A stretch of DNA of 64,000 nucleotides from Leidyana gryllorum EB-2025a (GCA_048772705.1 JBLWGC010000104.1:744001-808000), one strand, 5' to 3'; counted from the stretch's first letter, positions 1,986 through 63,125 are shown. The notes: generated by a model not told the origin, from the letters alone. Translations and numbers: made by a program.

Positions 1986-3800
1986 CTATCGATCTAAACG
2001 TGTAACATAGGGTGAGTCGCCGAGACTTCGCCCTTTGGTCTCACGAACAAAGAAGACCATCACCCCCACCGACAGCAGGGATAGTGCTAAAAGCAAAAGC
2101 GAGTATGTTGTGGCCAACCAAGTGTGTCAAACTGGGAGTGGGGACTGGGCCAGATGGAGGGGGATAGCAGTTGGGTGGAGGCCCGTGAGAGCCGCAAATG
2201 TGTGGCCAATGTGTGCGGTCCACCTACCCGTGAATACGACAAAGTTGGTTCGCAAACGGAGGTACCGAGACGCACACACAATCGCGATAGCGGCCAACCA
2301 ATTACAAGCAACCGCCAGGCTGCTTGAACCGCTTTTAATTTCAAGCGGATACACTTCGAATAGATACACCCATAATATGGGGCCGTAACCAATCGCAAAC
2401 GAAAGAATGAACCCCAACACAGAAGCAGGGCCCGCCCAGGTTGCAAAGATGGTACCAGGGTAGACCCAATAAGCAACAAGGGCAGGCAGCAACGACACTG
2501 TTTGGAAGATGCAGCCCCAGATCAGTAACTTCCGTCGTCCGGTACGCTCAATGAGGAATGCAGCTGGAAAAGTTGCCACAACATTGATGAAGAAAATGAT
2601 GGTGGTGCACACAGCTGCCCATTGTTCAGACAGCCGTGCCTCGCGGAACATATCAGTGCTAGCCGATACAAACACGTTGATACCGCTGAGTTGTTGGAAG
2701 GCAGATAGCACGCATCCCAGAACTATTACATTCCGCAACTCTCGGAAGCGCAAAGCTTTCCGAAGACTCATTCCTGCTCGCTGTGCCACTTGAGAGGTTT
2801 GTACTTCAGTTTGGATCATTGTCAGTTCGATGGTAACGTCATCTTTATCATTAACATGCTGAAGGACCCGCAACGCCTCCAAATCACGTTGTCGGCGGAG
2901 ATACCAGTGAGGTGTCTCAAAGGGGAAGGCATAACCGAGCAGATAGCCGCCAATTGCGACAGGTATCAAAGTAATCAGTACACTGCCGCGCCACCAGAGT
3001 TTCCCGAATAGACTGGGCGTCGTGAACAGATCACTCCTCCACGTAGAGGTGCGATGTTGATCTGGAATGGGATCAAAGAAAGCCAAGGGGAGCCCAATGG
3101 CGGTACCAACCAAGATACCCGTGACAATGAAGATCTGGTGAAAGATGCCGTAGAATCCTCGAACTTTGGGAGGTGTCATTTCGGAGAGGTATGTTGGCAC
3201 CGCCACGCTGGCCACCCCAACCGCATAGCCATCAACTAGGCGTGCCCAAACGAACGACTCCCAAGTGTGGCTCACGACAGTCGTCACAGCACCAAAGAAG
3301 AACAGAGCAAAGGAAATCAGTATAGTTGTCCGCCTTCCAGCGTTGAGCAGTCCGCTGCAAGTCAATGCTCCCAACGTGGCGCCGATGAAGAGGGCCGTGG
3401 TGATCCAGGCTTCGTAATTCAGGGCCTGGGTGCATTCGTGGGGCGTTCTGAGTACCTCTTCTGCCCCGGCACACCAGTTCATTTCCCAGGCGATGTGTCC
3501 GAGGCATGTATTGAGTTGGCTCACACTGAAACCGAACAAGAAAGAACCGATACACGCAGCCAGTACCACCTTGCTGACATTGGGCAGCGGTTGTAGGCGG
3601 GACTTGCGTTCTGGATGTGTCGGGTCCAGAGGAGTGATTTCGTCGGGGTCAATCGCTCTTGGGACATGTAGAGCTTCTTCCTCTTGGAGTATGTCCGCTA
3701 ATACACCGGCTGGATCGGGTCGCGGGTCCGAACCCATTTGTACCAAAGACATAGCAGTGCTATCATCCAAGATTCTACTTTGTGAACTGGAACTTGTCAT
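1986..3800 (-). CDS. MFS sugar porter, apicomplexan HT1/GT1-like hexose transporter
   Basis: Motifs GRR, YLSEMTPPKVRG, FQQLSGIN, IERTGRRKLL, GYGPILWVYLFEVYP. A final exon after a ~137-nt intron gives VRETKG...DSPY and a stop at 1986. Confidence 0.93.
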
Positions 3801-41718: not shown

Positions 41719-41909
41719 ATAATATCCGAATAAATCCAATAAAGATCATTGGACGCGTTGGTAAAGAGGCAAGTAGACACAAATACGTTGTAGGTAACAA
41801 CAATCTGACGCAACAAAATAGGATAAACATTAGGAACACGTTGAGCGGGTCTCGAGAGATAGATTCGAGATTGACGCTAAACAACGTGAAACGCCAGACT
41901 AGCGTTCGT

Positions 41910-42044
41910 CAGGCACGAGGCCCCCAGAAATTGCGATACGCAGAGGTGCGTAACGACGGGAAGTGGCTCGTCAGTTTTCAATGTAGCAACTAATTCGTCA
42001 TCCGCTGAGCGTCATTGACAGAACTAATGCCCCTGAGCAAGGAT
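41910..42044 (-). ncRNA. U4: U4 spliceosomal snRNA
   Basis: Minus strand reads AUCCUUGCUCAGGGGCA (U4/U6 stem II), a 5' stem-loop with kink-turn-type CAAUGA...GAUG, UUGCUACAUUGAAAACU (stem I region), Sm site AAUUUCUGG and a terminal hairpin. Confidence 0.92.
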
Positions 42045-45917: not shown

Positions 45918-48459
45918 ATGGCTACTACATTCGCCTTCAATGCTGACATTCAGCAGTTGATGAGTTTGATCATCAATACCTTCTACAGCAACAAGGACAT
46001 TTATCTGCGTGAGCTTATCTCCAACGCTTCCGATGCCATCGATAAGGCTCGCTACCGCGCCCTTACCGAACCCGACTTTGTCAAGGACGAGCCTTCTTAC
46101 ACCATCAAGCTCATCCCCAACAAGGACGCATCTACTCTTACCATTGCCGACACTGGTATTGGTATGACCAAGAACGAGTTGATCAACAACCTCGGTACTA
46201 TCGCCCGCTCTGGCACCAAGGCCTTCATGGAGGCTCTCGAGAGCTCCACTGGCGACGTCAGCATGATCGGTCAATTCGGTGTCGGTTTCTACTCGGCTTA
46301 CCTCGTCGCTGACAAGGTCACTGTTGTCACCAAGCACCCCGAAGATGAGCAATACATCTGGGAATCCGCTGCTGGTGGCTCCTTCACTGTGGCCCCCTGG
46401 ACTGAGGAGTCTGGCTACCCCAAGATCAACCGCGGTACTCACATCGTTTTGCACATGAAGGAGGACCAGGCCGAATATCTTGAGGAGCGCAAGATCCGCG
46501 ACCTCGTCAAGAAGCACTCCGAGTTCATCAACTTCAACATTGAGCTCGCCTGCAAGAAGACTAAGACTGAGGAAGTCCCTCTTGAGGGTGAGGAACTCGA
46601 GGCTGCTCTGAAGAAGGAAGCCGAGGAAAAGGAGAACAAGAAGACTGAAGGCGAAGAGGAAGAAAAGAAAGACGAAGACAAGAAGGACGACGAGGAGGAG
46701 AAGAAGGACGAGGAGGAAGAGAAAAAGGAGGACAAACCCAAGACTAAGAAGGTCACCACCGACTACGTCGAATATGAGACCCTCAACAAGAACAAACCCA
46801 TCTGGATGCGCAAACCTGAAGAGGTTACCGAGGAAGAGTACGGCAACTTCTACAAGAGCATCAGCAATGATTGGGAAAGCCACCTCGCTGTCAAGCACTT
46901 CAGCGTGGAGGGCCAACTTGAGTTCAAGGCCGTTCTCTTCGTCCCCAAACGTGCTCCCTTCGACCTCTTCGAGACTCGCAAGAAGCGCAGCAACGTCAAA
47001 CTCTATGTTCGTCGTGTCTTTATCACCGACGATTGCGAGGACCTCATCCCCGAGTGGCTCGGCTTCATCAAGGGTGTCGTCGACTCCGAGGACCTCCCTC
47101 TCAACATCTCTCGTGAGACCCTCCAACAGAACAAGATCCTCAAGGTCATCCGTAAGAACCTTGTCAAGAAGTGTCTTGAGCTGTTCGCCGAGCTCACCGA
47201 GAAGAAGGAAGACTTCCTCAAGTTCCATGAGCAGTTCGGCAAGAACCTCAAGCTCGGTGTCCACGAGGACAGCACCAACCGCGAGAAGGTAAATACAAAC
47301 AATCCGGCCTGATGAGTGAGACGGCACTCAAGCGAAAGATCACTGTTCATTAATCGCAATGATCTTGGGTAATACAGTGCTAAAATGAGGGAGTATGGAA
47401 AGAGCCTCATATGAGCCCGAGTTCTTCGGGCTCCGGGGAACACTGCCATACAACCGGTGCGGTCCTTAAGGCGTCCATGAGAGGTTGGGAGTTGCACCCG
47501 CAACAGCCCAACCCGGAGGTCAGTGTGCCTCTGGACCTCATGGAATCTGAGTCATAACCGTTCCACATCTCACTTCATCGCTACGTTTGTGTGACTGCTA
47601 CTGTACACTGAGCCCTTCGTCACACTTGTTGCCCTTTCAGATCGCTGATCTCCTGCGCTTCCACACCTCCAAGTCCGGTGATGAAGTTGTTTCACTCCGC
47701 GAGTACTGTGACCGCATGAAGGAAGGCCAGAAGGTCATCTACTACATCACTGGCGAATCCAAGGCCGCCGTCGCCAACTCGCCCTTCTTGGAGGGACTCA
47801 AGAAGCGCGGTCTTGAGGTTGTATACATGACCGACCCCATTGATGAGTATGTCGTCCAGCAACTCCGCGAGTTCGACGGAAAGAAACTCCAGTGCTGCAC
47901 CAAGGAGGGTCTCGAGCTTGCTGACTCCGAGGAGGAGAAGAAGAAGATGGAGGAGCTCAAGGCCTCCTATGAGCCTCTCTGCAAGTTGATGAAGGAAGTA
48001 CTCCACGACAAGGTCGAGAAGGTCCAACTCGGCGAGCGCGTCAGCGACTCTCCTTGTGTCCTCGTGACATCTGAGTTTGGCTGGTCCGCCAACATGGAAC
48101 GTATCATGAAGGCCCAAGCTCTTCGTGACAACAGCATGACTTCCTACATGGTTTCTAAGAAGACTATGGAGATCAATCCTCAGCACCCCATCATGCAGGA
48201 GTTGAAGAAGAAATCCGAGACTGACAAGTCCGACAAGACTGTCAAGGATCTCATCTGGCTCCTCTTCGACACTGCTCTGCTCACCTCTGGTTTCTCGCTC
48301 GACGAACCCACCAGCTTCAGCAGCCGTATCCATCGTATGATCAAGTTGGGTCTCAGCATCGATGAAGACCCCGCTGATCTCGAGGGTGAGGACTTACCTC
48401 CTCTGGAGGAGGCTGAGGGAGCAGCTGAGGAAGTTTCCAAGATGGAAGAGGTCGACTAA
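45918..48459 (+). CDS. HSP90: Cytosolic HSP90 (exons 45918-47288 and 47641-48459)
   Basis: [66 protein letters not shown]-terminal MEEVD; GT at 47289, AG at 47640. Confidence 0.99.
47306..47553 (+). ncRNA. Candidate intron-encoded structured RNA (large box C/D-like) in the HSP90 intron
   Basis: TGATGA at 47310 and CTGA at 47547 are closed by GGC/GTC, with multiple internal helices (see findings). Confidence 0.55.
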
Positions 48460-63053: not shown

Positions 63054-63125
63054 GGGCACGTAGCTCAGGGGTAGAGCAGCTGACTGCAGATCAGCAGGTC
63101 TGCGGTTCAATTCCGCACGTGCCCT
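63054..63125 (+). tRNA. tRNA-Cys (GCA)
   Basis: Full cloverleaf: GGGCACG/CGTGCCC acceptor, GCTC/GAGC D-arm, GCTGA-CTGCAGA-TCAGC anticodon arm, TGCGG-TTCAATT-CCGCA T-arm. Confidence 0.98.

Follow-up and report, generated by a model that had tools for sequence, protein, structure and literature searches.

The DNA considered here is a 64,000-nucleotide (nt) segment of the Leidyana gryllorum EB-2025a genome (GCA_048772705.1 JBLWGC010000104.1:744001-808000), termed the window. The gene at positions 45918-48459 encodes the cytosolic HSP90 of this gregarine. Its exons were translated and searched separately, each by itself, and the exon translations display the C-terminal end MEEVD*. The closest HSP90 matches are those of Gregarina sp. 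(78%), Protomagalhaensia (77%) and G. niphandrodes (74%). The subject of this report is the intron between the two exons and the putative small nucleolar RNA (snoRNA) within it. The gene is laid out as follows.

45918-47288: HSP90 exon 1
47289-47640, plus strand: HSP90 intron, host of the predicted snoRNA; 352 nt, GT..AG, phase 0
47641-48459: HSP90 exon 2, ending in MEEVD*

The intron is real and spliced as drawn, because contigs from three public runs of close relatives (exons ~94-97% identical) skip exactly 352 bases. This agrees with an earlier note on this DNA, which had given the intron as 352 nt. Only one copy of the intron sequence is found in the 15.5 Mb genome. The minimum free energy (MFE) of its plus strand is -122.6 kcal/mol compared to -104.6 +/- 5.8 for shuffled sequences (z = -3.1), i.e. 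the fold is not equal to that of shuffled sequence, a check that the note had proposed. The minus strand fold has a z of -2.2 against shuffles. A search of Rfam 15 over positions 47200-47720, at the gathering level and at E <= 10, shows no relevant family. The note had seen no sign of U3, U14, snR30 or RNase P/MRP, and among the Rfam families, which include snR30/U17, the Plasmodium RUFs and the SNORA families, none of these is matched at E <= 10.

The intron very probably encodes a box H/ACA snoRNA on the HSP90 sense strand, a predicted guide whose core of ~196 nt is at positions ~47375-47570. The core evidence is observed: the intron and its splicing, the box motifs, the fold, a complementarity to ribosomal RNA (rRNA), conservation with covarying stems, and genes for the proteins of the ribonucleoprotein (RNP). 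The parts of the RNA are as follows, where LSU is the large subunit.

47375-47445, plus strand: 5′ hairpin; lower stem CAGUG/CACUG, inner helices AUGAGG/CCUCAU and GAGCCCGA/UCGGGCUC
47448-47453, plus strand: H box AUACAA, which fits ANANNA; 2 nt from the 5′ hairpin and 2 nt from the 3′ hairpin
47456-47564, plus strand: 3′ hairpin with a Y-shaped top; folds alone and with the pockets held open, and is part of an end-to-end match to a coccidian model (47458-47570)
47456-63 / 47557-64: lower stem of the 3′ hairpin, GGUGCGGU / ACCGUUCC
47464-47469, plus strand: 5′ guide element CCUUAA; pairs with LSU rRNA UUAAGG, 3′ of the target U-C
47470-81 / 47537-48: upper stem of the 3′ hairpin
47482-47536: Y-shaped top of the 3′ hairpin
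47549-47556, plus strand: 3′ guide element GAGUCAUA; pairs with LSU rRNA UAUGACUC, 5′ of the target U; overlaps a D box supposed in the earlier note
47565-47567, plus strand: ACA box; abuts the lower stem and is kept in seven species; predicted mature 3′ end near 47570

The sequence displays a hairpin-hinge-hairpin-tail layout, with hairpins at 47375-47445 and 47456-47564 and a 10-nt hinge between them. Positions 47375-47570, with pockets and boxes kept unpaired, give the hairpin-hinge-hairpin-tail fold at -74 kcal/mol. The helices listed in the earlier note are all present in the intron, i.e. TGAG/CTCA, AGATCA/TGATCT, CAGTG/CACTG, ATGAGG/CCTCAT, GAGCCCGA/TCGGGCTC, TCCATGAG/CTCATGGA and the two apical hairpins.

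The pocket of the 3′ hairpin is complementary to the LSU rRNA of the same genome, 5′-UAUGACUC-[UC]-UUAAGG-3′. There are 8+6 Watson-Crick base pairs (bp) with no G-U pair, and exactly two nucleotides, a U followed by a C, are left unpaired at the top of the pocket. This is the geometry of an H/ACA guide, a bipartite complementarity around an unpaired U-N. From the first paired base of the 3′ guide to the ACA the distance is 16 nt, which is within the 14-16 nt characteristic of H/ACA RNAs. The target string is present in the genome's own LSU rRNA, where three copies were found, and the target uridine is U2146 (LSU at L013:1810-5038). When the full LSU, 5.8S and small subunit (SSU) rRNAs are scanned (SSU from L021), the pairing score at U2146 is 14 and the next best is 9.5; none of 300 shuffled pockets reaches a score of 14. 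An unconstrained H/ACA target scan gives many chance matches, and LSU U2146 is the only one that recurs across species.

The rDNA copy L013 (G000:C157:3500-13400) has the full LSU and 5.8S sequences and the 3′ third of the SSU only, in three pieces (model positions 1221-1823). Its neighbours are a 5S rRNA gene and, on its flanks, about a dozen tRNA genes. Contig C73 (L021) carries an entire SSU-5.8S-LSU unit.

The helix-69 (H69) region of yeast 25S rRNA has pseudouridines (Ψ) at positions 2258, 2260, 2264 and 2266, all of which are kept to human. Yeast Ψ2258 and Ψ2260 are E. coli positions 1915 and 1917, and the guide for Ψ2266 is snR84. The local rRNA sequence in L. gryllorum is AAC-U-A-U-G-A-C-U-C-U-C-UUAAGG. 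If the U-A-U is numbered 2258-2260, the uridine at +6 becomes 2264 and that at +8 becomes 2266. It is the +8 uridine that the pocket presents, and therefore the predicted product is the equivalent of yeast Ψ2266. By this alignment U2146 corresponds to U2266 of yeast 25S rRNA, on the 3′ side of helix 69, and is the predicted pseudouridine target. Shifting the register (6+8 bp, one G-U) would place U2144, the equivalent of 2264, in the pocket; this is found in the L. gryllorum sequence only and is not conserved in the other species.

Genes for Cbf5 (DKCLD domain), Gar1 and Nop10 are encoded in this genome. By the known working of H/ACA RNPs, the spliced intron would be debranched and then trimmed to the part shielded by Cbf5/dyskerin, Nop10, Gar1 and Nhp2. 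The 3′ hairpin would pair through its internal loop with LSU rRNA 5′-UAUGACUC-[U C]-UUAAGG-3′, and this pairing would present U2146 to Cbf5 for conversion to pseudouridine. That a stable RNA accumulates, where exactly it ends and that U2146 is modified are inferences.

The earlier note had placed an RNA in this intron between a C box, TGATGA (47310), and a D box, CTGA (47547). Both motifs are present. Two further features of the intron lie upstream of the core, and the first of these contains the TGATGA.

47311-47321, plus strand: 5′ arm of a flank stem, containing TGATGA; pairs with 47568-47579, just past the ACA (11 bp, one bulge, -14.6 kcal/mol)
47336-47366, plus strand: upstream hairpin HP1, AAGAUCA/UGAUCUU with a 17-nt loop, outside the H/ACA core

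A large non-canonical box C/D RNA between the two motifs, which would bind Snu13 and fibrillarin, is highly improbable. A 3-bp closure, GGC/GUC, can be drawn for it, and the distance of the CTGA from the 3′ splice site is 90 nt, as the note had given it, which is in keeping with a C/D RNA. However the C-box-like motif reads CUGAUGA, with a C where a purine is expected (RUGAUGA), and the closing stem is just 3 bp, one of them G-U, as against the 4 bp or more of C/D RNAs. The CUGA is fully accounted for as part of the conserved guide complementary to rRNA. It is the start of the 3′ guide CUGAGUCAU (47547-55), and the TGATGA is located in the flank stem, outside the H/ACA core; thus the two motifs do not bound the RNA. 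The CUGA is not a conserved box, since the orthologous position in six other species is UUGA (Plasmodium) or AUGA (coccidia), and the C box is without a counterpart there. In a scan of LSU, 5.8S and the 3′ third of SSU, neither box has beside it an antisense element of the C/D type, for which 10 nt or more are expected next to D or D′; the best duplexes are of 9-10 bp with 2-4 G-U pairs. No Rfam C/D family matches. A C/D reading with a K-turn was dropped: the supposed bulge is of different length in different Plasmodium species, and neither box is conserved.

An intron is present at the identical HSP90 codon (between …REK and I…) in every relative compared, eight species in all.

G. niphandrodes: 348 nt, L002:4354-4701
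P. gaboni: 771 nt
P. berghei: 998 nt
P. relictum: 586 nt
Hammondia: 865 nt, L008:2668-3532
Besnoitia: 766 nt
Neospora: 944 nt
Vitrella: 116 nt, L009:2488-2603

The same pocket (CCUUAG / GAGUCA), ACA spacing and Y-shaped top are found in P. gaboni, P. berghei, P. relictum, Hammondia, Besnoitia and Neospora. Across the seven species (L. gryllorum, three Plasmodium and three coccidians) GAGUCA does not vary, and its G is always 16 nt before the ACA. The pocket strands are ACCUUAG or ACCUUGG with UGAGUCAU in Plasmodium, and CCUUAG with GAGUCA in coccidia; both select the uridine equivalent to U2146. Folded alone, each of the seven sequences takes the same form: the lower stem leads to an internal loop, an upper stem and a three-way junction bearing two apical hairpins, and the ACA directly abuts the lower stem. 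The stems are swapped wholesale between clades, i.e. GGUGCGGU/ACCGUUCC in L. gryllorum, UCGCUU/AAGCGA in Plasmodium and CGCGGC/GCCGCG in Hammondia, with the loop strands fixed. The note had called the RNA far larger than a guide snoRNA; within its family it is of no unusual size, as the 3′ domain by itself is 115 nt here and 132-192 nt in coccidia and Plasmodium. As the orthologous element is present in the same intron of Haemosporida and Coccidia, the pairing of snoRNA and host gene appears to be older than the divergence of the main apicomplexan lineages.

The coccidian and Plasmodium RNAs have an extra canonical 5′ hairpin with the lower stem CCAAGA/UCUUGG or CCAAAU/AUUUGG and the pocket UUNAAUU / CCAGACG, followed by an H box. 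A further small hairpin is located between this 5′ hairpin and the 3′ domain, which makes these three-hairpin RNAs. The 5′ hairpin has a weak SSU candidate target, UGUCUGG[UU]AAUU, of 7+4 bp, which is tied with other sites. The L. gryllorum sequence is without the CCAGACG pocket and its H box follows a different hairpin. HP1 and the GGGUAAUACA that follows it resemble the lower stem and hinge of the coccidian and Plasmodium 5′ hairpin (CCAAGA/UCUUGG, then GGGAAAUCA). From this resemblance HP1 is a possible remnant of that hairpin, a proposal made with low confidence. The 8-mer AGACGGCA was considered as a homologous motif and dropped: GACGGC is apical in the 3′ domain of Plasmodium and coccidia, and is 5′ of everything in the L. 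gryllorum sequence. The conserved CCAGACG in the 5′ hairpin of coccidia and Plasmodium is a separate guide, which is missing from the L. gryllorum sequence.

A covariance model (R1) was made from the three coccidian 3′ domains only (Hammondia, Neospora and Besnoitia; alignment A3). With filters off, this coccidia-only model aligns end to end with window positions 47458-47570 at 24.7 bits. The E-value, a rough figure, is 6e-7 in 521 nt and 9.7e-5 in 83 kb, and the match is the best non-self match in the whole window. The same model gives P. berghei 2427-2564 at E = 0.05. A second model, R2, gives E = 0.016 for P. gaboni and E = 0.39 for P. relictum; over this genome the HSP90 intron is its only match. 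In a MAFFT alignment of five 3′ domains the 5′ sides were out of place, and the model-based alignment A5, of five sequences, was used in its stead. Ninety-four percent of the A5 cells are paired and 29 of the 44 pairs change on both sides. This pairing is equalled by none of 500 shuffles, and with the partners slid ~42% of the cells pair. The earlier note had proposed a covariation check on HSP90 introns of other apicomplexans, and by these figures the stems do covary. It had described the element as an unclassified RNA encoded in an intron of a strongly expressed gene. The intron does hold a conserved and structured non-coding RNA (ncRNA) outside Rfam; its class is H/ACA by the present reading, and its boundaries are other than those given.

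Another explanation of the folded intron is that there is no stable product and that the helices serve splicing, bringing the 5′ splice site to the branch point in a genome of short introns, or form a temperature switch for HSP90. This is unlikely. The long-range stem 47311-21/47568-79 (-14.6 kcal/mol) does bracket the core, the MFE structure has another hairpin towards the intron's 3′ end, and both the fold z of -3.1 and the lack of contigs over the intron are compatible with a purely structural role. Such a role, however, leaves unexplained the two short single strands, the ACA spacing, and a complementarity to one rRNA site that is fixed from gregarines to Plasmodium with every stem changed. 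The flank stem may well have a part in splicing alongside the snoRNA, not in place of it. The note's proposal of a temperature-sensitive splicing element finds nothing in its support, and the conserved parts are explained by the rRNA complementarity.

The hairpin in the 3′ part of the intron is of 7 bp, at ~47589-47625. The flank stem that brackets the snoRNA could aid the folding or the splicing of the long intron. The two together would reduce the effective separation of the splice sites.

The HSP90 intron of G. niphandrodes shows no meaningful identity to the L. gryllorum intron in a plain alignment. It has a well-folded H/ACA-like hairpin at L002:4457-4555 followed by ACAUCA (to 4561), with z = -3.8, and a Y-shaped hairpin before an ACA downstream. 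No rRNA target was found for these hairpins in the target scans. The presence of the H/ACA-like hairpin and ACAUCA suggests that this intron may host a guide with another target. The 116-nt intron of the chromerid Vitrella contains no snoRNA-like element although it is at the same codon, so that the position of the intron is either older than the snoRNA or independent of it. Rfam searches of the Plasmodium and G. niphandrodes HSP90 loci show no relevant family. Sub-threshold matches to mir-297, mir-1277 and mir-3149 in the P. gaboni intron are spurious and come from (TA)n/TATG repeats (L004:2896-3100, 3530-3600).

The L. gryllorum element might also be a decaying relic of an ancestral snoRNA, non-functional in this gregarine, a fate that the G. 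niphandrodes copy may have met. The pocket is lost from the intron of G. niphandrodes, and in L. gryllorum the 5′ hairpin is without a recognisable target and the CCAGACG pocket of coccidia and Plasmodium is missing. We nevertheless consider decay improbable. Of the seven species L. gryllorum has the best pocket, with 14 Watson-Crick bp and no G-U; both stems are intact, as are the H and ACA boxes and the spacing of 16 nt; and this is the sole such element in a genome where the target site is conserved.

Several observations weigh against an H/ACA guide RNA in this intron. The lower stem of the 3′ hairpin has one U-U mismatch. The loop of the 5′ hairpin is atypical, being broken up by an extra helix, and its internal loop has no rRNA target in scans of LSU, 5.8S and the full SSU; the 5′ hairpin may be structural only. 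The intron of G. niphandrodes, the nearest sequenced relative, has no U2146 pocket and no covariance-model match. With default filters the coccidian model has no matches outside coccidia, the E-values from the model are approximate, and A5 has the advantage of a fit to the structure of the model itself. Among the H/ACA families of Rfam none matches the intron, even with the threshold at E <= 10. Finally, no contigs from four public runs cover the intron interior; these runs are assembled contigs, and the zero depth over the intron therefore says nothing about a small stable RNA.

Elsewhere in the window a U4 spliceosomal snRNA gene is located at 41907-42044 on the minus strand (62.6 bits) and a tRNA gene at 63054-63125 on the plus strand, both at the Rfam gathering level.

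The H/ACA RNA read here is of a standard class, with a standard job at a well-known site. What is new is a family outside Rfam, the Y-shaped 3′ domain, and a guide kept in one HSP90 intron across gregarines, coccidia and haemosporidians. An apicomplexan HSP90-intron snoRNA was not found in the searchable literature, and the Plasmodium copy may already stand in the ncRNA survey of Chakrabarti et al. 2007. The outsized intron in a compact gregarine genome is explained as a snoRNA host. The thin catalogue of apicomplexan snoRNAs gains an H/ACA guide for a conserved helix-69 pseudouridine, as predicted here. A snoRNA appears able to stay in one intron of one host gene across the deepest splits of Apicomplexa, and the conserved intron position is a handle for locating the guide in new apicomplexan genomes.

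A broader proposal is that the linkage of snoRNA and HSP90 is apicomplexan-wide, dates from before the separation of gregarines, coccidia and haemosporidians, and co-produces the helix-69 guide with the heat-shock response, and that the RNA defines a lineage-specific subtype of H/ACA RNA, Y-shaped in its 3′ domain and built ancestrally of three hairpins. This is speculative and rather doubtful. If the linkage were true, a ribosome modification at an intersubunit bridge would rise on HSP90 induction, e.g. when the temperature of the host changes. Toxoplasma and Plasmodium offer a route to testing the role of one H69 pseudouridine and its tie to HSP90 expression.

The predicted RNA is like yeast snR84, and like the human guide for the equivalent 28S site, in its class and in its predicted target nucleotide in the H69 region. 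Unlike snR84, its 3′ hairpin is topped by a three-way junction with two hairpins, and its host is an HSP90 intron. There is also no detectable relationship of sequence family to snR84 (no Rfam match at E <= 10); the two may share descent, or their function only.

Vertebrate U14, a box C/D RNA, resides in introns of hsc70. The location is similar in that a snoRNA is found in an intron of a highly expressed chaperone gene. The two differ in that U14 is of the C/D class with a host of the Hsp70 family, and they are not homologous.

A further counterpart is the element in the HSP90 introns of Plasmodium, Hammondia, Neospora and Besnoitia. Unlike the L. gryllorum RNA, that element has the extra canonical 5′ hairpin with the CCAGACG / UUNAAUU pocket, followed by its H box; the host intron, the pocket for the U2146 equivalent, the ACA spacing and the Y-shaped 3′ domain are the same in both.

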